In this document: piece by piece, positions 24,903 to 54,384 of the stretch
Layout of the letters: each line of letters starts with the position of its first letter
Position numbering within the stretch: position 1 is the stretch's first letter
Position numbers and translations under genes: made by a program
The notes under the pieces: generated by a model
Databases searched by the model: none
What the model saw: the letters and a program-made list of their open reading frames with translations, nothing else
What the model was told of the DNA's origin: nothing
DNA from: Callorhinchus milii
Lineage: Eukaryota
Assembly (NCBI RefSeq): GCF_018977255.1
Contig: NW_024704836.1
Coordinates: 124,001 to 178,384 of the forward strand
Reading direction: 5' to 3'
DNA: 54,384 nt

Positions 24903-24951
24903 AGGGCCAGAGGATGGCGATCAGAGAGACGGTGAGAAAGGACAGACTCAT
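24903..24951 (-). CDS. TRBV: Leader exon of the inverted V (MSLSFLTVSLIAILWP)
   Basis: 49 nt with a GTGAGT donor, phase 1. The intron includes an N gap (24561-24729). Confidence 0.9.
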
Positions 24952-25619: not shown

Positions 25620-26235
25620 CGCTGTCCTTCCACACTCCCAGGTCAGGGTTAGAGACAAAGTAAAGCTCCTCTACACTGTGCGTCCGTCCACACTCCCAGG
25701 TCAGGGGTAGAGACACAGTAACGCTCCCTCTACACTGTGTGTTCACACTCCCAGGTCAGGGTTAGAGACACAGTAACGCTCCCTCTACACTGTGTGTCCA
25801 CACTCCCAGGTCAGGGTTAGAGACACAGTAAAGCTCCTCTACACTGTGCGTCCACACTCCCAGGTCAGGGTTAGAGACACAGTAAAGCTCCTCTACACTG
25901 TGTGTCCACACTCCCAGGTCAGGGGTAGAGACACAGTAACGCTCCCTCTACACTGTGCGTCCACACTCCCAGGTCAGGGTTAGAGACACAGTAACGCTCC
26001 TCTACACTGTGTGTCCACACTCCCAGGTCAGGGTTAGAGACACAGTAAACCTCCTCTACACTGTGCGTCCACACTCCCAGGTCAGGGTTAGAGACACAGT
26101 AACGCTCCCTCTACACTGTGCGTCCACACTCCCAGGTCAGGGTTAGAGACACAGTAACGCTCCCTCTACACTGTGCGTCCACACTCCCAGGTCAGGGTTA
26201 GAGACACAGTAACGCTCCCTCTACACTGTGCGTCC
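25620..26235. repeat. About 42-43-bp minisatellite
   Basis: Tandem CACTCCCAGGTCAGGGTTAGAGACACAGTAACGCTCCCTCTACACTGTGCGTCCA-type units. Confidence 0.92.
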
Positions 26236-26959
26236 AGGTCAGAGATATAGTCACAGTTAAGGTGGAGAGGTAGGAGGGGGCCGATGGTCGGGCGGGCGTG
26301 GCGAGGACAAGGCTGGAGCCTGCTGAGCGGAGGGAGCGGACAGGTTGTTAAGGGGTTAGCAGGTCGGAGAGGGCGAGGCCATAGAGGGCCTTGAGGATGA
26401 GAATTTTGAACTCCACATTCTCTGAAGGATGGGGAGCCAGTGGAGCCGGGCGAGGGTAGGCGCGATGCGGGGGTCACGAAGGGAGAGGACACGGGTTGCA
26501 GTGTTCTGGATGATCTGCAGCCTGTGGGGAGAGAGGAGTTCGAAAGGCCGACCGCCGAGCAGGGCATTGGCATAGTCGAACCTGGTCGTAACGAGGGTTT
26601 CAACAGCCTGACAAGTGGCTCACGGGGCCATCTTTCCACTGTGCCGTGTACCCAGGACGAAATGGTAAAGTTGCTAAATATTCAATCACAAGTAAACAAG
26701 TTCAATTCAGGCAGTGAATTTTTGGATCAGTGTTTGTGAGGGAAAGACTGTTGATGGTGGAACCACAGCACCACCTGGTGTGAAAGAAGAAAGAACCCGC
26801 ATTTTTAACTCCGAAACGCCTCAAAACACATTGCAGGACTTTACTGTCGAGTATAGTAACTGGGTATTTTCTAACAATCCTTCCATTTGATAAAGGGCCT
26901 TATCTTGTCGACAAACCATCTCAAAGCATTTCACAGGAATTTAAAATAAAATGTAGTGA

Positions 26960-28595
26960 CTGGGCGGTTTGTATGTATGTGTGTGTGTATGTCTATGTAC
27001 GTGTGTGTGTCTCTATGTTTGTATGTGTGTCTCTATGTGTGGTGTCCCTATGTATGTGTGTGTGTCTCTATGTATGTGTGTATGTCTCTATGTATGTGTG
27101 TATGTCTCTATGTATGTGTGTCTCTACATTTGTGTGTGTGTGTGTCTATATGTATGTGTGTGTGTGTCTATGTGCGTGTGTGTCTATGTGTGTGTGTGTG
27201 CCTATGTATGGGTGTGTGTCTCTATGTATGTGTGTCTCCACATTTGTGTGTGTGTCTATATATGTATGTGTGTCTATGCATGTGTGTCTATCTATATGTA
27301 TGTGTCTCTCTATGCATTTGAGTGTGTCTCTATGTACGTGTGTATGTGTCTATGTGTGTGTGTGCCTATGTATGTGTGTGTGTNNNNNNNNNNNNNNNNN
27401 NNNNNNNNNNNNNNNNNNNNNNNNNNNNNNNNNNNNNNNNNNNNNNNNNNNNNNNNNNNNNNNNNNNNNNNNNNNNNNNNNNNNNNNNNNNNNNNNNNNN
27501 NNNNNNNNNNNNNNNNNNNNNNNNNNNNNNNNNNNNNNNNNNNNNNNNNNNNNNNNNNNNNNNNNNNNNNNNNNNNNNNNNNNNNNNNNNNNNNNNNNNN
27601 NNNNNNNNNNAGTGTCTATGTATGTATGTGTCTATATATGTAAGTGTGTGTGTCTATGTATGTATGTGTCTATGTATATATGTCTGTGTCTATGTATATA
27701 TGTCTGTGTATGTGTGTCTATGTATGTGTGCCTATGTATGTGTGTCTCTATGTATGTGTGTGTGTCTCTGTATGTCTCTATATAATAACATAATAATCCT
27801 TGCATATGTGTGTGTCTCTAAATTTGTGTGTGTTTGTCTCTATGCATTTGAGTGTGTCTCTATGTACGTGTGTATGTGTCTATGNNNNNNNNNNNNNNNN
27901 NNNNNNNNNNNNNNNNNNNNNNNNNNNNNNNNNNNNNNNNNNNNNNNNNNNNNNNNNNNNNNNNNNNNNNNNNNNNNNNNNNNNNNNNNNNNNNNNNNNN
28001 NNNNNNNNNNNNNNNNNNNNNNNNNNNNNNATGCATTTGAGTGTGTCTCTATGTACGTGTGTGTGTGTCTATCATGTATCTATGTATGTATGTGTGTGTG
28101 AGTGTCTACGTATGTGTCTATGTATGTAAGTGTGTATGTATGTGTGTCTATGCATGTGTGTGTCTATGTATGTATGTAAGTGTGTGTGCGCCTATGTATG
28201 TATGTGCCTATGTATGTGTCTATGTATGTCTGTGTGTCTATGTGTGTGCGTCTGTGTGTGTCTATGTGTATGCGTCTGTGTGTGTATGTATGTGTTTGTA
28301 TGTGTGTGTTTATCAATNNNNNNNNNNNNNNNNNNNNNNNNNNNNNNNNNNNNNNNNNNNNNNNNNNNNNNNNNNNNNNNNNNNNNNNNNNNNNNNNNNN
28401 NNNNNNNNNNNNNNNNNNNNNNNNNNNNNNNNNNNNNNNNNNNNNNNNNNNNNNNNTATGCATACATATGCATGTATATGTGTATGCATGTATGTGTTTC
28501 TACGTATGCATGTATGTATGTGTCTATGTATGTATGTAAGTGTGTATGTATGTAAGTGTGTATGTATGTATGTGTCCATGTACGTATGTAAGTGT
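26960..28595. repeat. TG/TATG compound microsatellite block with three assembly gaps
   Basis: Low-complexity TGTGTATG repeats; N runs at 27384-27610, 27885-28030 and 28318-28456. Confidence 0.95.
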
Positions 28596-31050: not shown

Positions 31051-31126
31051 GTGCCACCAAGATGAATTCACCTGAACTCTCTCTTTCTGCATAAACTGTG
31101 TAGAAACTTAATATTCTGAGTGGCAC
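31051..31126 (+). ncRNA. SNORD26: C/D snoRNA U26 homologue
   Basis: GTGCCAC/GTGGCAC stem, a GATGA box C variant, guide TGAACTCTCTCTT (28S AAGAGAGAGUUCA) and terminal ATTCTGAG, as in recalled human U26. Confidence 0.85.
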
Positions 31127-31770: not shown

Positions 31771-32514
31771 GTGGCCAGAAATGAACCGGTTTTTGTTGTT
31801 CCGGGCGCGTCGCAATCTGAAATGTTGTCCCGTTTCTCCCGGCAGGAGCACGCACCGCTGCTGAATGTGACCTCGTTTGTGCAAGCAAACTCGGCTCTAT
31901 CCCGTCGCCAAGGTTTGTATTTCTCTGGTCTCTGCAGACATCTCATAGCTGCGAGCAGCAGCTGTTTGTGGTGTCACCACTTGGACCTCTTAATCCCTGC
32001 CTGAAGTATTTGCCCGCTGCTTTTTGTAGATTTTAGCTGTTCCAAATGATAACAACAATAATCCTTGCATTTTATATCTTATTATTGGAATATAAATATC
32101 AAAATTTGATCTCTCAAAGACAGGATAAGGCACTACGCCAAATGCAAGGATTATTATTATTATACAGCGCTTGGATCACTTTGTTGGGACGTCTCAACGC
32201 GCTTCACAGAATACACTGTAAAGCGAATTGACTGTGATTTGCGGGTGAATCTCGGCAGCCAATTGCGCACAGCGACATCCCACAAACGGTTGTGGGCTGA
32301 GTGAACAAATTTGTTGGTTTATTCTGTGAAGCGCTCCAGCGAGACGTCTCAATATCAAACTCGAGGATGATTATTGTTAAAATGTGTCTTCTAGGCATAC
32401 GTCTGGGTTTGTCAGAAGCTCAGGAGCAGTCACTTAACAATAACTCTTCCCTTGATAGTGGAACACCTTTATTGCGGGGATGGGTCTGTGTGTGTGGTTA
32501 GGGTGTCACGTTCC

Positions 32515-33114: not shown

Positions 33115-33240
33115 GTCCTCAGGATGACTTCATTGCATGTCTTATGTGTTGTCAGGAGCCAGAACCTGCAAAGGTGAACCCACTGGTATCTGCTGCATGA
33201 AATGAGGCGAACCTGTTACTTGTGAACTGTCTGATAGGAC
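33115..33240 (+). ncRNA. SNORD22: U22 snoRNA homologue (18S processing)
   Basis: GTCCT/AGGAC stem; CATGTCTTA, CCAGAACCTGCAAAGGTGAACCCACTGG and GAACTGTCTGA match recalled human U22. Confidence 0.9.
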
Positions 33241-34203
33241 TAATGTTAGCGCTGCTGTCAATGACAGGGACGGAGCCTGCTGACGGGAGTCTTAATGGGT
33301 CATTTTACTTTTTTTTTTGTAGGCATCACAAAGAAAAGTGGGCCAAACCGGTGAGTAACGCTCGGGTGGAACAAAGTGGGCCGTGTCGTCTTGTTTATTT
33401 GTTATCGCCCACAAAGTAAACTTGGTCACTCCACTTGACAGTGTATCCTGTGAAGCCCCTTGATAACGCTCAATGACATGACGAGGCTCTGTGTCAAATG
33501 CAGTAACGGCCACGACACTCCTTGCATTTGGTAGAGCGCCTCATCACGCCGCTGAGACGTCTCAAAGCGCTTCACAGAATAGGCTGTAAAATGGATTGAC
33601 TGCCAGGATTCTTCTTCTTGTGTACGTGACGAGTGTTGCTATGATGGTGTTGTGCCCAGGATTAAAACGAGTTGAGACGCTCTGGGTAGTGTGTAGTCTG
33701 TCGCAGGTCTAGTTGGAAGTCCCAGTTTACCTCGTTTAAATCTTGGCCAGTCTAGAATGAGCGGTGTTAGGCCACTTGCTTATTTCCTCGGCCAGTCGTG
33801 GAGTCCTGTTAGAGCCTGCGAGAGGACCCAGGTTCGATCCCCGGGCGGGGCGAAACGTTGGGCGAGTTTCCTTGCTCCGCACACACCGCTTGCGACTGTT
33901 TACCCAGCAGTAAGGAGGAACCCAGTTGTTCCATCGATTGGCTTTTCCAGGGGTATTGATTCCTTCCATAATAATAATAATAATAAATTGGTTGCTCAAT
34001 GTTTGTGGGGTGTCGCTGAGCGCAGTCGGCTGCCGCGTTTCGCCCACAGAAGACACGCAATCACTGCGCTTTGCAGTATGTCCTGTGGAGCGCTTTGAGA
34101 TACCCTTGAGGCCAAGATAAGGCGCTATATCAAATGCAAGGATCATTATTATCATATAGCCATCAGTTCCCACAGACGATGCTGTCTCTGCAAGCTCTCC
34201 TCC

Positions 34204-35825: not shown

Positions 35826-36292
35826 GATTTGACAGTGGGCGGGCGGGCCGGAGTGGGGGTACCTGGAGTAACCGACCCCGTTTGTCTGTGTTCCTTTGCA
35901 GGCACGAAACTCGGGAGCAACCGGCAAAGGTGAGCAGCAACCTGGGTAGCGTTGACAGTGGCTGAGCTGGGGGTGGGGTATGACCGTAGGCACCTCTCGA
36001 AGAGGAAGGTCTTCAGACACAACCTGAGGATCAGGATAATAATATTAATAAGACTTGCATTTGACACAGCGCCTCGTCATGTCTTTGAGACGTAGCAAAG
36101 CGCTTCACGGGACACACTGCAAAGTGTAGTAACTGTATTTTCTGGGCGAGAGATGTGGAAGGAAGGGGCAAGGCGGGTGAGGGGAGAGAGGAAGTGTCCC
36201 GGAGTTTCAGGATGTAGTGGCTGAAAGTACACTCATCCATTCCACCACCAGCGGCCGTGCTCTCAGCCGCCGTGCTCTACAGTAAAGCCCGA

Positions 36293-36366
36293 CTTCTTGT
36301 AATGACACTGTTACCGCCCCACTCTGTCTGAAATAAAGTGACTGATTGGTAACGTTCTGACTGGAG
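36293..36366 (+). ncRNA. SNORD31: First U31-like copy (class B prototype)
   Basis: GTAATGA..TTACCGCCCCACTCTGTCTGA..GTGACTGA..GGTAACGTTCTGA. Later class B copies with box C GTGATGA start at 37692, 38969, 40391, 41772, 43094, 44515, 45892, 47311, 48689, 50115, 51534, 52926 and 54297. Confidence 0.7.
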
Positions 36367-36708
36367 CCTTGGAATGCGCTCTCTCTTTCTCTCCTCTCTC
36401 CCTGGAGGGGCGCACCCTGCTTACCCAAGTATTAGGCGCAGGTTGGCAAGAGCCGAGACTTTTTGGCGGGCGGGGTTAACAGAGGTTAGCCGAGATCGCG
36501 GCGAAATTAGACATGATCAGGCGCTGGGTCAAACTCAGAAAGATTATTATTATTTAAGTAACGGGCAAAGTGAACTTTCTCCGCAGGACCTTGTACCTTA
36601 CGGAGCTGTGGAGGACAAAAGAGATCAGACCGAGGTAAGGTCGAGACACGTGTCCGCTCCACTCTTTAGGGGGTGGTGGTTTTCGCTGGAGGAATTAGTT
36701 TTAGCGGC

Positions 36709-36776
36709 TAAATATGTTGAGCCTGTTATCGCCCCAGTCTGATTGTTGGTGACTGAAACGGTAACCTCTGATTCAC
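36709..36776 (+). ncRNA. SNORD31: U31-like snoRNA class A (first of 13 copies)
   Basis: ATGTTGA..TATCGCCCCAGT-CTGA..GTGACTGAAACGGT..CTGA matches recalled human U31 (ACCGCCCCAGTCTGA..GTGACTGAAAGGT). Box C starts at 36714, 38136, 39418, 40839, 42223, 43542, 44958, 46336, 47757, 49139, 50564, 51974 and 53369. Confidence 0.8.
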
Positions 36777-39700
36777 TGCTGCTTTATCAGCATTTAACGG
36801 CCAGAGGACTCTTGTCCAGGGTTGGTTTTCGATCAGCCGGGTGTCTGACCACGCACGGAAACCCGGCACCGTGACCAGCCGGGTGTCTGACACGCACGGA
36901 AACCCGGCACCGTGACCAGCCGGGTGTCTGACACGCACGGAAACCCGGCACCGTGACCAGCCGGGTGTCTGACACGCGTGGACGCCTGTCCCCGTTTGCT
37001 TAAGGGTATCCAAACCCGACTGAGGATTCCCCACGTCCCACCCACACCCCAGAGTGTGCTGTCTGGCCAAGCTTTCCCGCTGCTTGTCCAGCGAGGACCC
37101 ACCCTCCCCGTTACTTATAGGGCTTTGGCTGCAGGATTAACAGGAGCTGAGGGAGGATTCCCTCAGTTTTAGGCCGGTCAGACAGGAGGTAGAGGGGAAG
37201 ACTAACATTGCTGCTTTGCTTGACCTTACCGGACCTTCTTTTCTATTTCAGCTATAACCAGGACATGAAGTGTTTGCTGGATTAAGGGGAACAGTGGGCT
37301 GACTCACTGAGGGCTGAACAGGTTCTTGTGGGACGGTAACCTTTCACCAATAGACACCAATCAATACTGGTGACCATTGAGGTTCACACGCAACTTACTT
37401 ACCTGGTGAGTTTCTGGGATCGCATCACAGAGTGGGGGTGGGGGAGAGGCTCACCTCATATGTTAAGCTGTCGGCTTCCCTTCAGAAAGAAAATAGGGGT
37501 AATAACTCGGTCACTCGACCCACGGCTGTTTGTGGGGACGTCGCTGGGCGCAATGGGCTGCCAGGTTTTGCCCCTCGGGAACGCACAGTCACTACGCTTT
37601 GCTGCGTATCCTGCAATGGGGTTGGAGACCTCTATTTGGGTCAAATGACGAGGGTTATTATCAGGCGGTGTACAGTAAAGCCCGGCTCTCTGTGATGACT
37701 CTGTTCCCGCCCACTTTGTCTGATATAAAGTGACTGAATGGTAACGTTCTGACTGGAGCCTTGGAATGCGCTCTCTCTCTCTCTCCTCCTCCCTCCCTCC
37801 CTGGAGGGGCGCACCCTGCTTACCCAATTCCGGAGAGTATTAGGCGCAGGTTGGCAGGAGCCGAGTCTTTTTGGCGGGGGGGGGGAGTTAACGGAGGTTA
37901 GTCGAGATCACAGCGAAATTTGCGCTTTTGAGACGTGATCAGGCGCTGCGTCAACCTCAGAAAGATTATTATTATTTAAGTAACGGGCAAAGTGATCTTT
38001 CTTCGCAGGACCTTGTACCTTACGGAGCTGTGGAGGACAAAAGAGATCAGACCGAGGTAAGGTCGAGACACGTGTCCGCTCCACTCTTTAGCGGGTGGTG
38101 GTTTTCGCTGGAGGAATTAGTTTTAGCGGCTAAATATGTTGAGCCTGTTATCGCCCCAGTCTGATTGTTGGTGACTGAAACGGTAACCTCTGATTCACTG
38201 CTGCTTTATCAGCATTTAACGGCCAGAGGACTCTTGTCCAGGGTTGGTTTTCGATCAGCCGGGTGTCTGACAACGCACGGAAACCCGGCGCCGTGACCAG
38301 CCGGGTGTCTGACACGCACGGAAACCCGGCACCGTGACCAGCCGGGTGTTTGACACGCACGGAAACCCGGCACCGTGACCAGCCGGGTGTCTGACACGCG
38401 TGGACACCTGTCCCCGTTTGCTTAAGGGTCTCCAAACCCGACTGAGGATTCCCCACGTCCCACCCACACCCCAGAGTGTGCTGTCTGGCCAAGCTTTCCC
38501 GCTGCTTGTCCAGCGAGGACCCACCCTCCCCGTTACTTATAGGGCTTTGGCTGCAGGATTAACAGGAGCTGAGGGAGGATTCCCTCAGTTTTAGGCCGGT
38601 CAGACAGTAGGTAGAGGGGAAGACTAACATTGCTGCTTTGCTTGACCTTACCGGACCTTCTTTTCTATTTCAGCTTTTACCAGGACATGAAGTGTTTGCT
38701 GGATTAAGGGGAACAGTGGGCTGACTCACTGAGGGCTGAACAGGTTCTTGTGGGACGGTAACCTTTCACCAATAGACACCAATCAATACTTGTGACCATT
38801 GAGGTTCACACGCAACTGACTTACCTGGTGAGTTTCTGGGATCGCATCACAGAGTGGGGGGGGGAGAGGCTCACCTCATATGTTAAGCTGTCGGCTTCCC
38901 TTCAGAAAGAAAATAGGGGGAATGACGAGGGTTATTATCAGGCGGTGTACAGTAAAGCCCGGCTCTCTGTGATGACTCTGTGCCCACCCACTTTGTCTGA
39001 TATAAAGTGACTGAATGGTAACGTTCTGACTGGAGCCTTGGGATGCGCTCTCTCTCTCTCTCCTCCCTCCCTCCCTGGAGGGGCGCACCCTGCTTACCCA
39101 ATTCCGGAGAGTATTAGGCGCAGGTTGGCAGGAGCCGAGTCTTTTTGGCGGGGGGGGGGTGGGGTGGAGTTAACGGAGGTTAGTCGAGATCACAGCGAAA
39201 TTTGCGCTTTTGAGACGTGATCAGGCGCTGCGTCAACCTCAGAAAGATTATTATTATTTAAGTAACGGGCAAAGTGATCTTTCTTCGCAGGACCTTGTAC
39301 CTTACGGAGCTGTGGAGGACAAAAGAGATCAGACCGAGGTAAGGTCGAGACACGTGTCCGCTCCACTCTTTAGCGGGTGGTGGTTTTCGCTGGAGGAATT
39401 AGTTTTAGCGGCTAAATATGTTGAGCCTGTTATCGCCCCAGTCTGATTGTTGGTGACTGAAACGGTTACCTCTGATTCACTGCTGCTTTATCAGCATTTA
39501 ACGGCCAGAGGACTCTTGTCCAGGGTTGGTTTTCGATCAGCCGGGTGTCTGACAACGCACGGAAACCCGGCACCGTGACCAGCCGGGTGTCTGACACGCA
39601 CGGAAACCCGGCACCGTGACCAGCCGGGTGTCTGACACGCACGGAAACCCGGCACCGTGACCAGCCGGGTGTCTGACACGCGTGGACGCCTGTCCCCGTT

Positions 39701-42700
39701 TGCTTAAGGGTATCCAAACCCGACTGAGGATTCCCCACGTCCCACCCACACCCCAGAGTGTGCTGTCTGGCCAAGCTTTCCCGCTGCTTGTCCAGCGAGG
39801 ACCCACCCTCCCCGTTACTTATAGGGCTTTGGCTGCAGGATTAACAGGAGCTGAGGGAGGATTCCCTCAGTTTTAGGCCGGTCAGACAGTAGGTAGAGGG
39901 GAAGACTAACATTGCTGCTTTGCTTGACCTTACCGGACCTTCTTTTCTATTTCAGCTATAACCAGGACATGAAGTGTTTGCTGGATTAAGGGGAACAGTG
40001 GGCTGACTCACTGAGGGCTGAACAGGTTCTTGTGGGACGGTAACCTTTCACCAATAGACACCAATCAATACTGGTGACCATTGAGGTTCACACGCAACTT
40101 ACTTACCTGGTGAGTTTCTGGGATCGCATCACAGAGTGGGGGGAGAGGCTCACCTCACATGTTAAGCTGTCGGCTTCCCTTCAGAAAGAAAATAGGGGTA
40201 ATAACTCGGTCACTCGACCCACGGCTGTTTGTGGGGACGTCGCTGGGCGCAATGGGCTGCCAGGTTTTGCCCCTCGGGAACGCACAGTCACTACGCTTTG
40301 CTGCGTATCCTGCAATGGGGTTGGAGACCTCTATTTCGGTCAAATGACGAGGGTTATTATCAGGCGGTGTACAGTAAAGCCCGGCTCTCTGTGATGACTC
40401 TGTTCCCGCCCACTTTGTCTGATATAAAGTGACTGAATGGTAACGTTCTGACTGGAGCCTTGGGATGCGCTCTCTCTCTCTCTCTCCTCCTCCCTCCCTC
40501 CCTGGAGGGGCGCACCCTGCTTACCCAATTCCGGAGAGTATTAGGCGCAGGTTGGCAGGAGCCGAGTCTTTTTGGCGGGGGGGGGGGGAGTTAACGGAGG
40601 TTAGCCGAGATCACAGCGAAATTTGCGCTTTTGAGACGTGATCAGGCGCTGCGTCAACCTCAGAAAGATTATTATTATTTAAGTAACGGGCAAAGTGATC
40701 TTTCTTCGCAGGACCTTGTACCTTACGGAGCTGTGGAGGACAAAAGAGATCAGACCGAGGTAAGGTCGAGACACGTGTCCGCTCCACTCTTTAGCGGGTG
40801 GTGGTTTTCGCTGGAGGAATTAGTTTTAGCGGCTAAATATGTTGAGCCTGTTATCGCCCCAGTCTGATTGTTGGTGACTGAAACGGTAACCTCTGATTCA
40901 CTGCTGCTTTATCAGCATTTAACGGCCAGAGGACTCTTGTCCAGGGTTGGTTTTCGATCAGCCGGGTGTCTGACACGCACGGAAACCCGGCACCGTGACC
41001 AGCCGGGTGTCTGACACGCACGGAAACCCGGCACCGTGACCAGCCCCGGTGTCTGACACGCGTGGACGCCTGTCCCCGTTTGCTTAAGGGTATCCAAACC
41101 CGACTGAGGATTCCCCACGTCCCACCCACACCCCAGAGTGTGCTGTCTGGCCAAGCTTTCCCGCTGCTTGTCCAGCGAGGACCCACCCTCCCCGTTACTT
41201 ATAGGGCTTTGGCTGCAGGATTAACAGGAGCTGAGGGAGGATTCCCTCAGTTTTAGGCCGGTCAGACAGTAGGTAGAGGGGAAGACTAACATTGCTGCTT
41301 TGCTTGACCTTACCGGACCTTCTTTTCTATTTCAGCTATAACCAGGACATGAAGTGTTTGCTGGATTAAGGGGAACAGTGGGCTGACTCACTGAGGGCTG
41401 AACAGGTTCTTGTGGGACGGTAACCTTTCACCAATAGACACCAATCAATACTGGTGACCATTGAGGTTCACACGCAACTTACTTACCTGGTGAGTTTCTG
41501 GGATCGCATCACAGAGTGGGGGGGGGAGGCTCACCTCACATGTTAAGCTGTCGGCTTCCCTTCAGAAAGAAAATAGGGGTAATAACTCGGTCACTCGACC
41601 CACGGCTGTTTGTGGGGACGTCGCTGGGCGCAATGGGCTGCCAGGTTTTGCCCCTCGGGAACGCACAGTCACTACGCTTTGCTGCGTATCCTGCAATGGG
41701 GTTGGAGACCTCTATTTGGGTCAAATGACGAGGGTTATTATCAGGCGGTGTACAGTAAAGCCCGGCTCTCTGTGATGACTCTGTTCCCGCCCACTTTGTC
41801 TGATATAAAGTGACTGAATGGTAACGTTCTGACTGGAGCCTTGGGATGCGCTCTCTCTCTCTCTCTCTCCTCCTCCCTCCCTCCCTGGAGGGGCGCACCC
41901 TGCTTACCCAATTCCGGAGAGTATTAGGCGCAGGTTGGCAGGAGCCGAGTCTTTTTGGCGGGGGGGGGGGGGAGTTAACGGAGGTTAGCCGAGATCACAG
42001 CGAAATTTGCGCTTTTGAGACGTGATCAGGCGCTGCGTCAACCTCAGAAAGATTATTATTATTTAAGTAACGGGCAAAGTGATCTTTCTTCGCAGGACCT
42101 TGTACCTTACGGAGCTGTGGAGGACAAAAGAGATCAGACCGAGGTAAGGTCGAGACACGTGTCCGCTCCACTCTTTAGCGGGTGGTGGTTTTCGCTGGAG
42201 GAATTAGTTTTAGCGGCTAAATATGTTGAGCCTGTTATCGCCCCAGTCTGATTGTTGGTGACTGAAACGGTAACCTCTGATTCACTGCTGCTTTATCAGC
42301 ATTTAACGGCCAGAGGACTCTTGTCCAGGGTTGGTTTTCGATCAGCCGGGTGTCTGACAACGCACGGAAACCCGGCACCGTGACCAGCCGGGTGTCTGAC
42401 ACGCACGGAAACCCGGCACCGTGACCAGCCGGGTGTCTGACACGCACGGAAACCCGGCACCGTGACCAGCCGGGTGTCTGACACGCACGGAAACCCGGCA
42501 CCGTGACCAGCCGGGTGTCTGACACGCGTGGACGCCTGTCCCCGTTTGCTTAAGGGTCTCCAAACCCGACTGAGGATTCCCCACGTCCCACCCACACCCC
42601 AGAGTGTGCTGTCTGGCCAAGCTTTCCCGCTGCTTGTCCAGCGAGGACCCACCCTCCCCGTTACTTATAGGGCTTTGGCTGCAGGATTAACAGGAGCTGA

Positions 42701-45700
42701 GGGAGGATTCCCTCAGTTTTAGGCCGGTCAGACAGTAGGTAGAGGGGAAGACTAACATTGCTGCTTTGCTTGACCTTACCGGACCTTCTTTTCTATTTCA
42801 GCTATAACCAGGACATGAAGTGTTTGCTGGATTAAGGGGAACAGTGGGCTGACTCACTGAGGGCTGAACAGGTTCTTGTGGGACGGTAACCTTTCACCAA
42901 TAGACACCAATCAATACTGGTGACCATTGAGGTTCACACGCAACTTACTTACCTGGTGAGTTTCTGGGATCGCATCACAGAGTGGGGGGAGAGGCTCACC
43001 TCACATGTTAAGCTATCGGCTTCCCTTCAGAAAGAAAATAGGGGGAATGACGAGGGTTATTATCAGGCGGTGTACAGTAAAGCCCGGCTCTCTGTGATGA
43101 CTCTGTTCCCGCCCACTTTGTCTGATATAAAGTGACTGAATGGTAACGTTCTGACTGGAGCCTTGGGATGCGCCCCCTCTCTCTCTCCTCCTCCCTCCCT
43201 CCCTGGAGGGGCGCACCCTGCTTACCCAATTCCGGAGAGTATTAGGCGCAGGTTGGCAGGAGCCGAGTCTTTTTGGCGGGGAGGGGGGGGGAGTTAACGG
43301 AGGTTAGCCGAGATCACAGCGAAATTTGCGCTTTTGAGACGTGATCAGGCGCTGCGTCAACCTCAGAAAGATTATTATTATTTAAGTAACGGGCAAAGTG
43401 ATCTTTCTTCGCAGGACCTTGTACCTTACGGAGCTGTGGAGGACAAAAGAGATCAGACCGAGGTAAGGTCGAGACACGTGTCCGCTCCACTCTTTAGCGG
43501 GTGGTGGTTTTCGCTGGAGGAATTAGTTTTAGCGGCTAAATATGTTGAGCCTGTTATCGCCCCAGTCTGATTGTTGGTGACTGAAACGGTAACCTCTGAT
43601 TCACTGCTGCTTTATCAGCATTTAACGGCCAGAGGACTCTTGTCCAGGGTTGGTTTTCGATCAGCCGGGTGTCTGACACGCACGGAAACCCGGCACCGTG
43701 ACCAGCCGGGTGTCTGACACGCACGGAAACCCGGCACCGTGACCAGCCGGGTGTCTGACACGCACGGAAACCCGGCACCGTGACCAGCCGGGTGTCTGAC
43801 ACGCGTGGACGCCTGTCCCCGTTTGCTTAAGGGTATCCAAACCCGACTGAGGATTCCCCACGTCCCACCCACACCCCAGAGTGTGCTGTCTGGCCAAGCT
43901 TTCCCGCTGCTTGTCCAGCGAGGACCCACCCTCCCCGTTACTTATAGGGCTTTGGCTGCAGGATTAACAGGAGCTGAGGGAGGATTCCCTCAGTTTTAGG
44001 CCGGTCAGACAGTAGGTAGAGGGGAAGACTAACATTGCTGCTTTGCTTGACCTTACCGGACCTTCTTTTCTATTTCAGCTATAACCAGGACATGAAGTGT
44101 TTGCTGGATTAAGGGGAACAGTGGGCTGACTCACTGAGGGCTGAACAGGTTCTTGTGGGACGGTAACCTTTCACCAATAGACACCAATCAATACTGGTGA
44201 CCATTGAGGTTCACACGCAACTTACTTACCTGGTGAGTTTCTGGGATCGCATCACAGAGTGGGGGGGGGAGGCTCACCTCACATGTTAAGCTGTCGGCTT
44301 CCCTTCAGAAAGAAAATAGGGGTAATAACTCGGTCACTCGACCCACGGCTGTTTGTGGGGACGTCGCTGGGCGCAATGGGCTGCCAGGTTTTGCCCCTCG
44401 GGAACGCACAGTCACTACGCTTTGCTGCGTATCCTGCAATGGGGTTGGAGACCTCTATTTGGGTCAAATGACGAGGGTTATTATCAGGCGGTGTACAGTA
44501 AAGCCCGGCTCTCTGTGATGACTCTGTTCCCGCCCACTTTGTCTGATATAAAGTGACTGAATGGTAACGTTCTGACTGGAGCCTTGGGATGCGCTCTCTC
44601 TCTCTCCTCCTCCCTCCCTCCCTGGAGGGGCGCACCCTGCTTACCCAATTCCGGAGAGTATTAGGCGCAGGTTGGCAGGAGCCGAGTCTTTTTGGCGGGG
44701 GGGGGGGAGTTAACGGAGGTTAGTCGAGATCACAGCGAAATTTGCGCTTTTGAGACGTGATCAGGCGCTGCGTCAACCTCAGAAAGATTATTATTATTTA
44801 AGTAACGGGCAAAGTGATCTTTCTTCGCAGGACCTTGTACCTTACGGAGCTGTGGAGGACAAAAGAGATCAGACCGAGGTAAGGTCGAGACACGTGTCCG
44901 CTCCACTCTTTAGCGGGTGGTGGTTTTCGCTGGAGGAATTAGTTTTAGCGGCTAAATATGTTGAGCCTGTTATCGCCCCAGTCTGATTGTTGGTGACTGA
45001 AACGGTAACCTCTGATTCACTGCTGCTTTATCAGCATTTAACGGCCAGAGGACTCTTGTCCAGGGTTGGTTTTCGATCAGCCGGGTGTCTGACAACGCAC
45101 GGAAACCCGGCACCGTGACCAGCCGGGTGTCTGACACGCACGGAAACCCGGCACCGTGACCAGCCGGGTGTCTGACACGCGTGGACGCCTGTCCCCGTTT
45201 GCTTAAGGGTCTCCAAACCCGACTGAGGATTCCCCACGTCCCACCCACACCCCAGAGTGTGCTGTCTGGCCAAGCTTTCCCGCTGCTTGTCCAGCGAGGA
45301 CCCACCCTCCCCGTTACTTATAGGGCTTTGGCTGCAGGATTAACAGGAGCTGAGGGAGGATTCCCTCAGTTTTAGGCCGGTCAGACAGTAGGTAGAGGGG
45401 AAGACTAACATTGCTGCTTTGCTTGACCTTACCGGACCTTCTTTTCTATTTCAGCTATAACCAGGACATGAAGTGTTTGCTGGATTAAGGGGAACAGTGG
45501 GCTGACTCACTGAGGGCTGAACAGGTTCTTGTGGGACGGTAACCTTTCACCAATAGACACCAATCAATACTGGTGACCATTGAGGTTCACACGCAACTTA
45601 CTTACCTGGTGAGTTTCTGGGATCGCATCACAGAGTGGGGGGGGAGAGGCTCACCTCACATGTTAAGCTGTCGGCTTCCCTTCAGAAAGAAAATAGGGGT

Positions 45701-48700
45701 AATAACTCGGTCACTCGACCCAAGGCTGTTTGTGGGGACGTCGCTGGGCGCAATGGGCTGCCAGGTTTTGCCCCTCGGGAACGCACAGTCACTACGCTTT
45801 GCTGCGTATCCTGCAATGGGGTTGGAGACCTCTATTTGGGTCAAATGACGAGGGTTATTATCAGGCGGTGTACAGTAAAGCCCGGCTCTCTGTGATGACT
45901 CTGTTCCCGCCCACTTTGTCTGATATAAAGTGACTGAATGGTAACGTTCTGACTGGAGCCTTGGGATGCGCTCTCTCTCTCTCTCCTCCCTCCCTCCCTG
46001 GAGGGGCGCACCCTGCTTACCCAATTCCGGAGAGTATTAGGCGCAGGTTGGCAGGAGCCGAGTCTTTTTGGCGGGGGGGGGGGGGAGTTAACGGAGGTTA
46101 GCCGAGATCACAGCGAAATTTGCGCTTTTGAGACGTGATCAGGCGCTGCGTCAACCTCAGAAAGATTATTATTATTTAAGTAACGGGCAAAGTGATCTTT
46201 CTTCGCAGGACCTTGTACCTTACGGAGCTGTGGAGGACAAAAGAGATCAGACCGAGGTAAGGTCGAGACACGTGTCCGCTCCACTCTTTAGCGGGTGGTG
46301 GTTTTCGCTGGAGGAATTAGTTTTAGCGGCTAAATATGTTGAGCCTGTTATCGCCCCAGTCTGATTGTTGGTGACTGAAACGGTAACCTCTGATTCACTG
46401 CTGCTTTATCAGCATTTAACGGCCAGAGGACTCTTGTCCAGGGTTGGTTTTCGATCAGCCGGGTGTCTGACAACGCACGGAAACCCGGCACCGTGACCAG
46501 CCGGGTGTCTGACACGCACGGAAACCCGGCACCGTGACCAGCCGGGTGTCTGACACGCACGGAAACCCGGCACCGTGACCAGCCGGGTGTCTGACACGCG
46601 TGGACGCCTGTCCCCGTTTGCTTAAGGGTATCCAAACCCGACTGAGGATTCCCCACGTCCCACCCACACCCCAGAGTGTGCTGTCTGGCCAAGCTTTCCC
46701 GCTGCTTGTCCAGCGAGGACCCACCCTCCCCGTTACTTATAGGGCTTTGGCTGCAGGATTAACAGGAGCTGAGGGAGGATTCCCTCAGTTTTAGGCCGGT
46801 CAGACAGTAGGTAGAGGGGAAGACTAACATTGCTGCTTTGCTTGACCTTACCGGACCTTCTTTTCTATTTCAGCTATAACCAGGACATGAAGTGTTTGCT
46901 GGATTAAGGGGAACAGTGGGCTGACTCACTGAGGGCTGAACAGGTTCTTGTGGGACGGTAACCTTTCACCAATAGACACCAATCAATACTGGTGACCATT
47001 GAGGTTCACACGCAACTTACTTACCTGGTGAGTTTCTGGGATCGCATCACAGAGTGGGGGGGGAGAGGCTCACCTCACATGTTAAGCTGTCGGCTTCCCT
47101 TCAGAAAGAAAATAGGGGTAATAACTCGGTCACTCGACCCACGGCTGTTTGTGGGGACGTCGCTGGGCGCAATGGGCTGCCAGGTTTTGCCCCTCGGGAA
47201 CGCACAGTCACTACGCTTTGCTGCGTATCCTGCAATGGGGTTGGAGACCTCTATTTCGGTCAAATGACGAGGGTTATTATCAGGCGGTGTACAGTAAAGC
47301 CCGGCTCTCTGTGATGACTCTGTTCCCGCCCACTTTGTCTGATATAAAGTGACTGAATGGTAACGTTCTGACTGGAGCCTTGGGATGCGCTCTCTCTCTC
47401 TCTCCTCCCTCCCTCCCTGGAGGGGCGCACCCTGCTTACCCAATTCCGGAGAGTATTAGGCGCAGGTTGGCAGGAGCCGAGTCTTTTTGGCGGGGGGGGG
47501 GGGGGGAGTTAACGGAGGTTAGCCGAGATCACAGCGAAATTTGCGCTTTTGAGACGTGATCAGGCGCTGCGTCAACCTCAGAAAGATTATTATTATTTAA
47601 GTAACGGGCAAAGTGATCTTTCTTCGCAGGACCTTGTACCTTACGGAGCTGTGGAGGACAAAAGAGATCAGACCGAGGTAAGGTCGAGACACGTGTCCGC
47701 TCCACTCTTTAGCGGGTGGTGGTTTTCGCTGGAGGAATTAGTTTTAGCGGCTAAATATGTTGAGCCTGTTATCGCCCCAGTCTGATTGTTGGTGACTGAA
47801 ACGGTAACCTCTGATTCACTGCTGCTTTATCAGCATTTAACGGCCAGAGGACTCTTGTCCAGGGTTGGTTTTCGATCAGCCGGGTGTCTGACAACGCACG
47901 GAAACCCGGCACCGTGACCAGCCGGGTGTCTGACACGCACGGAAACCCGGCACCGTGACCAGCCGGGTGTCTGACACGCGTGGACGCCTGTCCCCGTTTG
48001 CTTAAGGGTATCCAAACCCGACTGAGGATTCCCCACGTCCCACCCACACCCCAGAGTGTGCTGTCTGGCCAAGCTTTCCCGCTGCTTGTCCAGCGAGGAC
48101 CCACCCTCCCCGTTACTTATAGGGCTTTGGCTGCAGGATTAACAGGAGCTGAGGGAGGATTCCCTCAGTTTTAGGCCGGTCAGACAGTAGGTAGAGGGGA
48201 AGACTAACATTGCTGCTTTGCTTGACCTTACCGGACCTTCTTTTCTATTTCAGCTATAACCAGGACATGAAGTGTTTGCTGGATTAAGGGGAACAGTGGG
48301 CTGACTCACTGAGGGCTGAACAGGTTCTTGTGGGACGGTAACCTTTCACCAATAGACACCAATCAATACTGGTGACCATTGAGGTTCACACGCAACTTAC
48401 TTACCTGGTGAGTTTCTGGGATCGCATCACAGAGTGGGGGGAGAGGCTCACCTCACATGTTAAGCTGTCGGCTTCTCTTCAGAAAGAAAATAGGGGTAAT
48501 AACTCGGTCACTCGACCCACGGCTGTTTGTGGGGACGTCGCTGGGCGCAATGGGCTGCCAGGTTTTGCCCCTCGGGAACGCACAGTCACTACGCTTTGCT
48601 GCGTATCCTGCAATGGGGTTGGAGACCTCTATTTGGGTCAAATGACGAGGGTTATTATCAGGCGGTGTACAGTAAAGCCCGGCTCTCTGTGATGACTCTG

Positions 48701-51700
48701 TGCCCACCCACTTTGTCTGATATAAAGTGACTGAATGGTAACGTTCTGACTGGAGCCTTGGGATGCGCTCTCTCTCTCTCTCTCTCCTCCTCCCTCCCTC
48801 CCTGGAGGGGCGCACCCTGCTTACCCAATTCCGGAGAGTATTAGGCGCAGGTTGGCAGGAGCCGAGTCTTTTTGGCGGGGGGGGGGGGAGTTAACGGAGG
48901 TTAGCCGAGATCACAGCGAAATTTGCGCTTTTGAGACGTGATCAGGCGCTGCGTCAACCTCAGAAAGATTATTATTATTTAAGTAACGGGCAAAGTGATC
49001 TTTCTTCGCAGGACCTTGTACCTTACGGAGCTGTGGAGGACAAAAGAGATCAGACCGAGGTAAGGTCGAGACACGTGTCCGCTCCACTCTTTAGCGGGTG
49101 GTGGTTTTCGCTGGAGGAATTAGTTTTAGCGGCTAAATATGTTGAGCCTGTTATCGCCCCAGTCTGATTGTTGGTGACTGAAACGGTAACCTCTGATTCA
49201 CTGCTGCTTTATCAGCATTTAACGGCCAGAGGACTCTTGTCCAGGGTTGGTTTTCGATCAGCCGGGTGTCTGACAACGCACGGAAACCCGGCACCGTGAC
49301 CAGCCGGGTGTCTGACACGCACGGAAACCCGGCACCGTGACCAGCCGGGTGTCTGACACGCACGGAAACCCGGCACCGTGACCAGCCGGGTGTCTGACAC
49401 GCGTGGACACCTGTCCCCGTTTGCTTAAGGGTCTCCAAACCCGACTGAGGATTCCCCACGTCCCACCCACACCCCAGAGTGTGCTGTCTGGCCAAGCTTT
49501 CCCGCTGCTTGTCCAGCGAGGACCCACCCTCCCCGTTACTTATAGGGCTTTGGCTGCAGGATTAACAGGAGCTGAGGGAGGATTCCCTCAGTTTTAGGCC
49601 GGTCAGACAGTAGGTAGAGGGGAAGACTAACATTGCTGCTTTGCTTGACCTTACCGGACCTTCTTTTCTATTTCAGCTATAACCAGGACATGAAGTGTTT
49701 GCTGGATTAAGGGGAACAGTGGGCTGACTCACTGAGGGCTGAACAGGTTCTTGTGGGACGGTAACCTTTCACCAATAGACACCAATCAATACTGGTGACC
49801 ATTGAGGTTCACACGCAACTTACTTACCTGGTGAGTTTCTGGGATCGCATCACAGAGTGGGGGGGGGAGAGGCTCACCTCACATGTTAAGCTGTCGGCTT
49901 CCCTTCAGAAAGAAAATAGGGGTAATAACTCGGTCACTCGACCCACGGCTGTTTGTGGGGACGTCGCTGGGCGCAATGGGCTGCCAGGTTTTGCCCCTCG
50001 GGAACGCACAGTCACTACGCTTTGCGGCGTAACCTGCAATGGGGTTGGAGACCTCTATTTGGGTCAAATGACGAGGGTTATTATCAGGCGGTGTACAGTA
50101 AAGCCCGGCTCTCTGTGATGACTCTGTTCCCGCCCACTTTGTCTGATATAAAGTGACTGAATGGTAACGTTCTGACTGGAGCCTTGGGATGCGGCCCCTC
50201 TCTCTCTCCTCCTCCCTCCCTCCCTGGAGGGGCGCACCCTGCTTACCCAATTCCGGAGAGTATTAGGCGCAGGTTGGCAGGAGCCGAGTCTTTTTGGCGG
50301 GGGGGGGGGGGGGAGTTAACGGAGGTTAGCCGAGATCACAGCGAAATTTGCGCTTTTGAGACGTGATCAGGCGCTGCGTCAACCTCAGAAAGATTATTAT
50401 TATTTAAGTAACGGGCAAAGTGATCTTTCTTCGCAGGACCTTGTACCTTACGGAGCTGTGGAGGACAAAAGAGATCAGACCGAGGTAAGGTCGAGACACG
50501 TGTCCGCTCCACTCTTTAGCGGGTGGTGGTTTTCGCTGGAGGAATTAGTTTTAGCGGCTAAATATGTTGAGCCTGTTATCGCCCCAGTCTGATTGTTGGT
50601 GACTGAAACGGTAACCTCTGATTCACTGCTGCTTTATCAGCATTTAACGGCCAGAGGACTCTTGTCCAGGGTTGGTTTTCGATCAGCCGGGTGTCTGACA
50701 ACGCACGGAAACCCGGCACCGTGACCAGCCGGGTGTACACGCACGGAAACCCGGCACCGTGACCAGCCGGGTGTCTGACACGCACGGAAACCCGGCACCG
50801 TGACCAGCCGGGTGTCTGACACGCGTGGACGCCTGTCCCCGTTTGCTTAAGGGTATCCAAACCCGACTGAGGATTCCCCACGTCCCACCCACACCCCAGA
50901 GTGTGCTGTCTGGCCAAGCTTTCCCGCTGCTTGTCCAGCGAGGACCCACCCTCCCCGTTACTTATAGGGCTTTGGCTGCAGGATTAACAGGAGCTGAGGG
51001 AGGATTCCCTCAGTTTTAGGCCGGTCAGACAGTAGGTAGAGGGGAAGACTAACATTGCTGCTTTGCTTGACCTTACCGGACCTTCTTTTCTATTTCAGCT
51101 ATAACCAGGACATGAAGTGTTTGCTGGATTAAGGGGAACAGTGGGCTGACTCACTGAGGGCTGAACAGGTTCTTGTGGGACGGTAACCTTTCACCAATAG
51201 ACACCAATCAATACTGGTGACCATTGAGGTTCACACGCAACTTACTTACCTGGTGAGTTTCTGGGATCGCATCACAGAGTGGGGGGAGAGGCTCACCTCA
51301 CATGTTAAGCTGTCGGCTTCCCTTCAGAAAGAAAATAGGGGTAATAACTCGGTCACTCGACCCACGGCTGTTTGTGGGGACGTCGCTGGGCGCAATGGGC
51401 TGCCAGGTTTTGCCCCTCGGGAACGCACAGTCACTACGCTTTGCTGCGTATCCTGCAATGGGGTTGGAGACCTCTATTTGGGTCAAATGACGAGGGTTAT
51501 TATCAGGCGGTGTACAGTAAAGCCCGGCTCTCTGTGATGACTCTGTTCCCGCCCACTTTGTCTGATATAAAGTGACTGAATGGTAACGTTCTGACTGGAG
51601 CCTTGGAATGCGCTCTCTCTCCTCCTCCCTCCCTCCCTGGAGGGGCGCACCCTGCTTACCCAATTCCGGAGAGTATTAGGCGCAGGTTGGCAGGAGCCGA

Positions 51701-54384
51701 GTCTTTTTGGCGGGGGGGGGGGGAGTTAACGGAGGTTAGCCGAGATCACAGCGAAATTTGCGCTTTTGAGACGTGATCAGGCGCTGCGTCAACCTCAGAA
51801 AGATTATTATTATTTAAGTAACGGGCAAAGTGATCTTTCTTCGCAGGACCTTGTACCTTACGGAGCTGTGGAGGACAAAAGAGATCAGACCGAGGTAAGG
51901 TCGAGACACGTGTCCGCTCCACTCTTTAGCGGGTGGTGGTTTTCGCTGGAGGAATTAGTTTTAGCGGCTAAATATGTTGAGCCTGTTATCGCCCCAGTCT
52001 GATTGTTGGTGACTGAAACGGTAACCTCTGATTCACTGCTGCTTTATCAGCATTTAACGGCCAGAGGACTCTTGTCCAGGGTTGGTTTTCGATCAGCCGG
52101 GTGTCTGACAACGCACGGAAACCCGGCACCGTGACCAGCCGGGTGTCTGACACGCACGGAAACCCGGCACCGTGACCAGCCGGGTGTCTGACACGCACGG
52201 AAACCCGGCACCGTGACCAGCCGGGTGTCTGACACGCGTGGACGCCTGTCCCCGTTTGCTTAAGGGTATCCAAACCCGACTGAGGATTCCCCACGTCCCA
52301 CCCACACCCCAGAGTGTGCTGTCTGGCCAAGCTTTCCCGCTGCTTGTCCAGCGAGGACCCACCCTCCCCGTTACTTATAGGGCTTTGGCTGCAGGATTAA
52401 CAGGAGCTGAGGGAGGATTCCCTCAGTTTTAGGCCGGTCAGACAGTAGGTAGAGGGGAAGACTAACATTGCTGCTTTGCTTGACCTTACCGGACCTTCTT
52501 TTCTATTTCAGCTATAACCAGGACATGAAGTGTTTGCTGGATTAAGGGGAACAGTGGGCTGACTCACTGAGGGCTGAACAGGTTCTTGTGGGACGGTAAC
52601 CTTTCACCAATAGACACCAATCAATACTGGTGACCATTGAGGTTCACACGCAACTTACTTACCTGGTGAGTTTCTGGGATCGCATCACAGAGTGGGGGGA
52701 GAGGCTCACCTCACATGTTAAGCTGTCGGCTTCCCTTCAGAAAGAAAATAGGGGTAATAACTCGCTCACCGACGGCTGTTTGTGGGGACGTCGCTGGGCG
52801 CAATGGGCTGCCAGGTTTTGATTTCGGACAAATAGCTGCGTATCCTGCAATGGGGTTGGAGATCTCTATTTGGGTCAAATGACGAGGGTTATTATCAGGC
52901 GGTGTACAGTAAAGCCCGGCTCTCTGTGATGACTCTGTGCCCCCCACTTTGTCTGATATAAAGTGACTGAATGGTAACGTTCTGACTGGAGCCTTGGATG
53001 CGCTCTCTCTCTCTCCTCCCTCCTCCCTCCCTGGAGGGGCGCACCCTGCTTACCCAATTCCGGAGAGTATTAGGCGCAGGTTGGCAGGAGCCGAGTCGTT
53101 TTGGGGGGGGGGGGGGGGAGTTAACGGAGGTTAGCCGAGATCACAGCGAAATTTGCGCTTTTGAGACGTGATCAGGCGCTGCGTCAACCTCAGAAAGATT
53201 ATTATTATTTAAGTAACGGGCAAAGTGATCTTTCTTCGCAGGACCTTGTACCTTACGGAGCTGTGGAGGACAAAAGAGATCAGACCGAGGTAAGGTCGAG
53301 ACACGTGTCCGCTCCACTCTTTAGCGGGTGGTGGTTTTCGCTGGAGGAATTAGTTTTAGCGGCTAAATATGTTGAGCCTGTTATCGCCCCAGTCTGATTG
53401 TTGGTGACTGAAACGGTTACCTCTGATTCACTGCTGCTTTATCAGCATTTAACGGCCAGAGGACTCTTGTCCAGGGTTGGTTTTCGATCAGCCGGGTGTC
53501 TGACAACGCACGGAAACCCGGCACCGTGACCAGCCGGGTGTCTGACACGCACGGAAACCCGGCACCGTGACCAGCCGGGTGTCTGACACGCGTGGACACC
53601 TGTCCCCGTTTGCTTAAGGGTATCCAAACCCGACTGAGGATTCCCACGTCCCACCCACACCCCAGAGTGTGCTGTCTGGCCAAGCTTTCCCGCTGCTTGT
53701 CCAGCGAGGACCCACCCTCCCCGTTACTTATAGGGCTTTGGCTGCAGGATTAACAGGAGCTGAGGAGGATTCCCTCAGTTTAGGCCGGTCAGACAGTAGG
53801 TAGAGGGGAAGACTAACATTGCTGCTTTGCTTGACCTTACCGGACCTTCTTTTCTATTTCAGCTATAACCAGGACATGAAGTGTTTGCTGGATTAAGGGG
53901 AACAGTGGGCTGACTCACTGAGGGCTGAACAGGTTCTTGTGGGACGGTAACCTTTCACCAATAGACACCAATCAATACTGGTGACCATTGAGGTTCACAC
54001 GCAACTTACTTACCTGGTGAGTTTCTGGGATCGCATCACAGAGTGGGGGGGGGGAGAGGCTCACCTCACATGTTAAGCTGTCGGCTTCTCTTCAGAAAGA
54101 AAATAGGGTAATAACTCGGTCACTCGACCACGGCTGTTTGTGGGACGTCGCTGGCGCAATGGGCTGCCAGTTTTGCCCCTCGGGAACGCACAGTCACTAC
54201 GCTTTGCTGCGTATCCTGCAATGGGGTTGGAGACCTCTATTTGGGTCAAATGACGAGGGTTATTATCAGGCGGTGTACAGTAAAGCCCGGCTCTCTGTGA
54301 TGACTCTGTTGCCGCCCACTTTGTCTGATATAAAGTGACTGAATGGTAACGTTCTGACTGGAGCCTTGGGATGCGCTCTCTCTC

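Follow-up and report, generated by a model that had tools for sequence, protein, structure and literature searches.

Which copy of a guide RNA serves a conserved ribosomal RNA (rRNA) site when every copy in view is damaged? The question is raised by a stretch of 54,384 nucleotides (nt) from Callorhinchus milii (contig NW_024704836.1, positions 124,001 to 178,384 of the forward strand; this whole stretch is referred to below as the window), which contains the U31 (SNORD31) end of an SNHG1/UHG-type host gene of small nucleolar RNAs (snoRNAs) of the box C/D kind. In human, SNORD31 guides 28S Gm4166 (PMC13507652); plants, yeast and human share both the site and its guide, which date back to the last eukaryotic common ancestor (PMC3511168), and for this reason a working guide is expected somewhere in the genome. 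The window holds 27 U31-like copies, namely 13 of a class A, 13 of a class B and a single diverged edge copy, B0, and no other SNORD31-like sequence was found in it beyond these. They form three lineages, each with a lesion of its own: class A has a U at position 2b of the kink-turn (k-turn), B0 has an A at 1b together with a shift in the spacing between guide and box, and class B combines the spacing shift with decay of the guide. The right guide at the right spacing is found within the window in class A only. All are SNORD31 paralogues and occupy their usual host gene; what is unusual is their amplified and damaged state. Because every copy in the window is flawed in a protein-binding box, in the guide or in the guide-to-box spacing, sequence alone cannot show which of them guides methylation. 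The account that we rank first, and hold tentatively, is that class A would be a weakened but working U31, with class B amplified alongside it as an orphan or pseudogene.

Class A Keeps the Guide and Alters Box C

All 13 class A copies carry the guide UAUCGCCCCAGU abutting a D' box CUGA, followed by the C'-like element GUGACUGA and a box D CUGA, and they are identical save for an A-to-T change in GGTAACC in the copies starting at 39412 and 53363. In a cmscan run against the SNORD31 model (RF00089), 11 of them reach 48.4 bits and the other two 46.4 bits (E about 5e-8), all above the gathering score of 40. The U31 target used for pairing was ACUGGGGCGGUA, obtained by complementing the consensus guide of RF00089 in Rfam and not from the species' own 28S sequence. 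Against this target the class A guide is paired at 12 of 12 positions, one of them a G-U, and the end of the duplex falls at D', where it also falls in the family consensus; therefore the same G is addressed. With up to two mismatches allowed, the 12-mer guide has 16 occurrences, against 3.5 expected.

Box C reads AUGUUGA in the same 13 copies, the T at 36717 replacing the consensus A at position 4. The earlier note on this DNA had described for this class a U31 guide with one G-U joined to this very box C, and the description holds throughout the array. It had also stated that the GA at box C positions 3-4 forms sheared pairs, which is borne out by the literature: this dinucleotide supplies G1b and A2b (PMC5579392). 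The core of the C/D k-turn consists of trans sugar-Hoogsteen (sheared) pairs G1b.A1n and A2b.G2n, with conserved adenines making cross-strand contacts; the guanines at 1b and 2n are read by the protein, G1b through direct contact, and folding of the box C/D k-turn occurs only upon protein binding (PMC5579392). From systematic mutagenesis of C'/D' motifs it was further concluded that Snu13 does not bind in vitro unless the two tandem sheared pairs are present and stem I is intact (PMC8413462). Class A retains G1b, A1n and G2n and has U at 2b in place of the lost A2b, so that the canonical k-turn signature is absent. Since Snu13 binding needs both sheared pairs and stem I, class A is non-canonical, as the earlier note proposed, and is predicted to be impaired.

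Around the boxes, two A-U pairs abut the motif and a stem of 6 base pairs (bp), AGCGGC/GCUGCU, is set 4-6 nt away, for a terminal duplex of -9.5 kcal/mol. Read by hand in the canonical register, stem II has three Watson-Crick pairs (G-C, A-U and G-C, the GAG/CUC helix), which may help the k-turn or just favour a regular helix. A shifted register, with the second GA of AUGUUGAG as 1b/2b, was tested by hand and rejected: the pairs become G.A, A.G and G.U, stem II goes on with C.C and C.U, and stem I consists of U.U, A-U and U.C. No UGAUGA-like motif that could serve as an alternative box C was found in the 5' flank of class A.

D' and C' lie inside the predicted internal helix of class A (Table 1), which also takes up the guide in its 5' part. 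Complementarity at the corresponding positions is seen in the Rfam consensus (aaUACC/GGUAUu) and in B0 (GUUACC/GGUAAC, 36310-36315 with 36348-36353). Two of its pairs covary between the shark and the Rfam consensus. This helix may account for the conserved 'D-guide' region of SNORD31, which lacks a known target. With D', C' and D perfect and a 6-bp external stem and the internal helix present, the lone lesion of class A fits recent or tolerated damage.

Class B and the Edge Copy B0

In class B it is the boxes that are sound. All 13 copies have GUGAUGA with CUGA at both D' and D, and thus supply G1b and A2b of the box C/D k-turn, at a SNORD31 score of 34.6 bits (E 9e-5), under the gathering score. 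The stem is a 5-bp GGCUC/GAGCC set 3 nt from the boxes, with a duplex of -11.8 kcal/mol that is the best of the three lineages; the nucleotides abutting the boxes, read by hand, are unpaired (C.C and U.U). The longest run with the U31 target is 7 bp, 12 nt from D', and the U31 antisense element is missing. The guide UUCCCGCCCACUUUGU is present in nine of the 13 copies. Across the 73-nt RNA only three columns vary, all of them in the guide, which makes four guide alleles among 13 copies and argues against a single conserved new target; the variation looks like drift, not a fixed new specificity. In the last copy (54297-54384, UUGCCGCCC), one change restores 8 contiguous pairs with the U31 target (one G-U), 7 nt from D'.

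Candidate targets of the class B guide on the + strand of the window need 3 mismatches and lie in an array intron, and were taken as chance. A 10-nt stretch with exact complementarity to the class B guide, AGTGGGCGGG, was read by eye at 35833-35842, just downstream of the orphan snoRNA of the host gene. We take this match to be chance as well; the target nucleotide would fall at the edge of the duplex.

B0 lies in a partial unit at the proximal edge of the array and is 90.4% identical to class B over 125 nt. Its guide core, UACCGCCCCA, matches the vertebrate consensus exactly, and its box C GUAAUGA has an A at 36301 for the consensus G, which puts A at 1b and removes the k-turn signature. This lesion, the loss of G1b, is worse than that of class A. 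A 4-nt insertion between guide and D' is common to B0 (CUCU) and class B (CUUU); with the U31 target, B0 forms a perfect 10-bp run that ends 6 nt before D', outside the position proper to the U31 antisense element. Its terminal pairing is the weakest of the three (-6.8 kcal/mol), and its fold is no better than shuffled sequence (z = -0.12). Aligned with B0, the class B guide is the U31 guide after the 4-nt insertion, two substitutions (A to C and C to U) and the deletion of a single C, and class B retains the ancestral box C that B0 has lost. Because B0 carries both the canonical core and the 4-nt insertion of class B, class B is a decayed U31 paralogue.

The earlier note, which did not describe B0, had framed classes A and B as a pair with reciprocal defects. 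The contrast between the two stands, and the pair gives way to three lineages, one of which joins a good guide core to a bad box C. Of its account of class B, the boxes are as described in every copy and the quoted guide fails in four of 13; the loss of U31 pairing is upheld, and the proposal of a stable orphan with a new target fares poorly in view of the B0 ancestry and the four guide alleles.

Structure and Origin of the Array

Repeat homology detected by blastn begins at 36278, and from 36402 on there are 13 units of 1274-1427 bp each, with pairwise identities of 98.1-100% (mean 99.4% over 1138 ungapped columns). As the array extends past the end of the window, the copy number is at least 27 and the number of units at least 13. 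Differences in unit length stem from a 41-bp minisatellite, from tracts of CT or of a single nucleotide, and from a stretch of about 140 nt that two units lack. A higher-order repeat structure was considered and rejected, the variants common to several units forming a mosaic with no simple pattern. Judged by splice consensus, each unit consists of a 48-nt exon, an intron with class A, a 154-nt exon and an intron with class B, a layout that would respect the rule of one snoRNA per intron.

The minisatellite has mostly 3.5 copies per unit (4.5 in one unit), and every 41-bp repeat contains the inverted repeat CCGGGT...ACCCGG. A dispersed repeat, probably a fragment of a short interspersed nuclear element, lies at 37511-37602 in the intron upstream of class B, and the stretch of about 140 nt that includes it is missing from the units at 37801 and 41885. 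Related pieces occur at 32254-32304 (-), 34000-34074, 11923-11974, 20569-20621 (-) and 22130-22171 (-).

Aligned with each other, class A and B0 agree at 9/10 positions of the guide core, 4/4 of D', 8/8 of GUGACUGA, 6/6 of GGUAAC and 4/4 of box D; about one in six positions is alike in the D'-C' spacer and about half in the 5' flank. That the modules were conserved while the spacers diverged indicates that both copies were kept by selection as U31 guides long after the duplication, and that their lesions are late. An old duplication would thus have placed two U31 paralogues in neighbouring introns, where both stayed under selection long enough for the spacers to diverge fully, with guide, D', C', GGUAAC and box D unchanged. 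Unequal crossing-over would then have multiplied a two-exon, two-intron unit with one copy of each, giving rise to the near-identical units, at least 13 in number. The near-identity of the units implies that the founder unit already had the lesions in class A box C and in the class B guide, or else that concerted evolution carried them through the array.

Which Copy Serves the U31 Site?

In the reading that we favour, class A would be the U31 orthologue, whose guide would set the conserved 28S G (human Gm4166, and the site of snR67, the yeast counterpart of U31) five nucleotides from D'. With A changed to U at position 4 of box C, the A2b.G2n sheared pair would give way to U.G, for which reason each class A copy should assemble poorly with SNU13. 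Class A would then act as a weakened but working guide, its dosage spread across many copies. In the class B lineage the 4-nt insertion between guide and D' would have come first and the guide would have been lost later in the array copies, leaving a co-amplified passenger, which would be either the pseudogene of a snoRNA or an orphan with competent boxes and no fixed target. B0 would represent an unhomogenised edge copy that kept the ancestral guide and lost G1b of its box C. A bolder version, in which class A is a natural small nucleolar ribonucleoprotein (snoRNP) of the box C/D kind that tolerates AUGUUGA, the at least 13-fold amplification was selected to offset a poor yield per copy, and class B, its boxes intact and its guide drifting, is an orphan array at birth, is one we consider unlikely.

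Several observations weigh against a working class A. It appears to have neither of the features required for Snu13 binding, with U at 2b and only two A-U pairs beside the boxes (compare PMC8413462), whereas the GA at box C positions 3-4 is kept in 7/7 single-copy snoRNAs of the same host gene, where variation is confined to positions 2 or 7. Lesions in all three lineages would also be expected from relaxed constraint on the whole cluster. The near-identity of the units is uninformative on selection, as class A has 1 variable column in 68 nt against a 3% background; a signal of selection within the array was sought and rejected, since, leaving aside how the variants of class B cluster in its guide, this column and the 3 of class B are indistinguishable from that background. 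The U31-like copies also lie far from the next clear 3' splice site, which is found about 220 nt (B0), 250 nt (B) and 476 nt (A) past their ends, as against about 70-82 nt for the obvious site downstream of 6/7 single-copy snoRNAs. Cryptic AG sites occur 47-100 nt downstream of A and B, and because these are closer, splice-site distance argues only weakly against splicing-coupled assembly. Taken together with the array running beyond the window, where a canonical copy may exist at the far edge, the lesions and the splice-site distances speak for the explanation ranked second, which we regard as only slightly less probable: none of the 27 copies guides, the array is a decaying, concertedly evolving block of pseudogenes, and a canonical U31 lies outside the window, possibly at an unhomogenised distal edge of the array or in another part of the genome, unless the modification is no longer made. 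An intact canonical U31 would read RUGAUGA with UACCGCCCCAGU-CUGA, and as the edge copy B0 retains ancestral states lost inside the array, the distal edge could keep an intact box C. In its favour, every lineage is damaged in an element needed in cis, with both sheared pairs and stem I required by Snu13 (PMC8413462) and G1b in direct contact with the protein (PMC5579392). Only about a third of annotated vertebrate snoRNA copies are expressed (PMC10234308; PMC12309372), expression being predicted mainly by box mutations, terminal-stem stability and host expression (PMC10234308), and box mutations with weak terminal stems mark the non-expressed ones (PMC10234308; PMC12309372). Literature searches returned nothing usable on cartilaginous-fish snoRNAs, and no RNA sequencing, immunoprecipitation or RiboMeth-seq data for this species. 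Against a block of pseudogenes stand the position of the copies in the canonical U31 slot of the host gene, the window offering no other SNORD31-like sequence, and the single lesion of class A, whose guide, spacing, D', C', D and internal helix are intact. Moreover, the coarse, Hamming-type pseudogene rule of SnoBIRD (C box score of at least 2 and D box score of at least 1, blind to which position is hit; PMC12309372) would not call class A a pseudogene, at scores of 1 and 0.

The other two copies have their own claims. Class B could be a stable, neo-functionalised orphan whose new guide (complement ACAAAGUGGGCGGGAA) methylates a new RNA opposite the fifth position from D'. Its perfect RUGAUGA, its CUGA at D' and D, a near-terminal stem that surpasses those of A and B0 and a guide common to nine copies are what such an orphan would present; we nevertheless judge this improbable and rank it third, given that the sole variation in its RNA falls on the guide, that this guide derives from that of U31 by small lesions, that no convincing target occurs in the window and that the nucleotides next to the boxes are unpaired in our hand reading. 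Ranked fourth, and in our estimation the least probable, is a working B0 that would use CUGU of its CUGU-CUGA tandem as a degenerate D', which restores the five-nucleotide spacing and makes the guide UACCGCCCCACU, one mismatch from consensus. The canonical core of B0 is perfect, degenerate D' boxes are common and yeast makes use of alternative ones (PMC5389607), but these yeast precedents move the site by one nucleotide, not four. Furthermore, GUAAUGA lacks G1b, the guanine of specific protein contacts (PMC5579392; PMC8413462), and the weak terminal pairing, the fold and a score below the Rfam gathering threshold likewise count against B0.

Relation to Known Systems

The closest relative is SNORD31 itself (U31, RF00089), intron-encoded in mammalian SNHG1/UHG, with which class A shares the 12-nt antisense element and its D' spacing, the C'-like and GGUA elements, the host slot after U30 and a score above the gathering threshold. 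It differs from it in several respects: there, RUGAUGA and one copy are the rule, and here box C is AUGUUGA in every class A copy, the guide has one G-U, at least 13 copies exist, each unit holds a second, guide-dead paralogue, and the copies lie far from obvious 3' splice sites. The array also resembles the snoRNA pseudogenes and unexpressed copies known from vertebrates (Fafard-Couture et al. 2023, PMC10234308; SnoBIRD, PMC12309372), likewise duplicated guides with box mutations, weak terminal stems or lost targets. Such pseudogenes are scattered in unfavourable loci, in contrast to the present copies, which occupy the ancestral host and slot with no intact parent in the window.

A further parallel is offered by the mouse Snhg14 array mentioned in PMC10234308. 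The organisation is alike: homogenised exon-intron units are found here too, and class B is without the U31 rRNA target. The shark array nonetheless derives from a still recognisable rRNA guide, alternates two paralogues per unit and sits inside a housekeeping multi-snoRNA host. The SNORD115/SNORD116 arrays in mammalian SNHG14, to which this parallel refers, consist of repeated exon-intron units, each with a box C/D snoRNA, that are homogenised and whose guides have no rRNA target.

Host Gene and Neighbouring Features

The host gene spans 28.4-54.4 kb of the window on the + strand, where the snoRNAs follow the order U26, U27, a U28-slot snoRNA, U22, U29, U30, an orphan and then the U31-like copies. 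This order agrees with the mammalian order in SNHG1, with the U31 slot after U30. At E up to 0.5, neither SNORD25 and SNORD28 upstream nor further SNORD31-like copies were found in the window. The duplexes of the single-copy snoRNAs span -5.9 to -19.6 kcal/mol. Their box C reads AAGAUGA in U26 (31059), AGGAUGA in the U28-slot snoRNA (32525) and in U22 (33121), and AUGAUGU in the orphan (35750). U26 is the exception among them, with no obvious 3' splice site within 140 nt past 31124.

Upstream of the host gene, two transfer RNA (tRNA) matches lie about 1.1 kb apart on opposite strands, at 11783-11854 (+) and 12935-12997 (-); one copy of the dispersed repeat adjoins the former. Four runs of N are present (24561-28456), and mir-297-like matches fall in (TG)n-type low-complexity sequence at 27.6-28.5 kb.

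Table 1. Coordinates of the U31-like copies, their parts and associated features (window positions).
Feature	Position	Strand	Details
U31-like tandem array	36278..54384	+	partial unit with B0, then 13 units; last unit cut by window end
Class A, copy 1 of 13	36708..36775	+	box C ATGTTGA 36714-36720; guide TATCGCCCCAGT 36727-36738; D' CTGA 36739-36742; C'-like GTGACTGA 36749-36756; box D CTGA 36768-36771
Class A, further copies (starts)	38130, 39412, 40833, 42217, 43536, 44952, 46330, 47751, 49133, 50558, 51968, 53363	+	
Class A internal helix, 7 bp	36725-36731 with 36759-36765	+	GTTATCG with CGGTAAC; minimum free energy and centroid fold, z = -2.37
Class B, copy 1 of 13	37686..37758	+	box C GTGATGA 37692-37698; guide TTCCCGCCCACTTTGT 37704-37719; D' CTGA 37720-37723; C'-like GTGACTGA 37730-37737; box D CTGA 37749-37752
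Class B, further copies (box C)	38969, 40391, 41772, 43094, 44515, 45892, 47311, 48689, 50115, 51534, 52926, 54297	+	
Class B guide variant	box C 38969 and 48689	+	TGCCCACCC (RNA UGCCCACCC)
Class B guide variant	box C 52926	+	TGCCC-CCC (RNA UGCCC-CCC)
Class B guide variant	box C 54297	+	TTGCCGCCC (RNA UUGCCGCCC)
B0, diverged edge copy of class B lineage	36292..36366	+	SNORD31 36.0 bits (E 3.5e-5), under gathering score 40
B0 parts		+	box C GTAATGA 36299-36305; guide core TACCGCCCCA 36312-36321, then CT; CTGT 36324-36327; D' CTGA 36328-36331; box D CTGA 36357-36360
Putative 48-nt exon	36587..36634	+	after ...ttctccgcag, before gtaagg; splice consensus only; invariant in 13/13 units
Putative second exon, 154 nt	37252..37405	+	after ...ttctatttcag, before gtgagt; splice consensus only; 4/154 columns variable
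41-bp minisatellite (CAGCCGGGTGTCTGACACGCACGGAAACCCGGCACCGTGAC)	36834..36977	+	Tandem Repeats Finder; intron downstream of class A
SNORD26	31054-31124	+	Rfam, above gathering score
SNORD22	33116-33240	+	Rfam, above gathering score
SNORD27	31690	+	Rfam, relaxed threshold only
SNORD29	34207	+	Rfam, relaxed threshold only
SNORD30	35032	+	Rfam, relaxed threshold only

Significance

The part of the large-subunit rRNA that holds the U31 site is universally conserved, and it is unusual that every visible copy in the canonical slot breaks a rule required in cis. A class A that works would be an exception, found in nature, to the rule that the C/D k-turn needs both of its sheared pairs, and a possible case of gene amplification offsetting a weak signal for RNP assembly. 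If it does not work, the locus would illustrate cleanly how concerted evolution spreads a dead allele through an array while edge copies keep ancestral states, and would also show how orphan snoRNA arrays can begin from an rRNA guide. The classes are distinguishable by sequence, which makes the question directly testable in one species. Should the reading of a weakened class A beside a nascent orphan array prove true, the locus would provide a model for the origin of arrays of the SNORD115/116 type.

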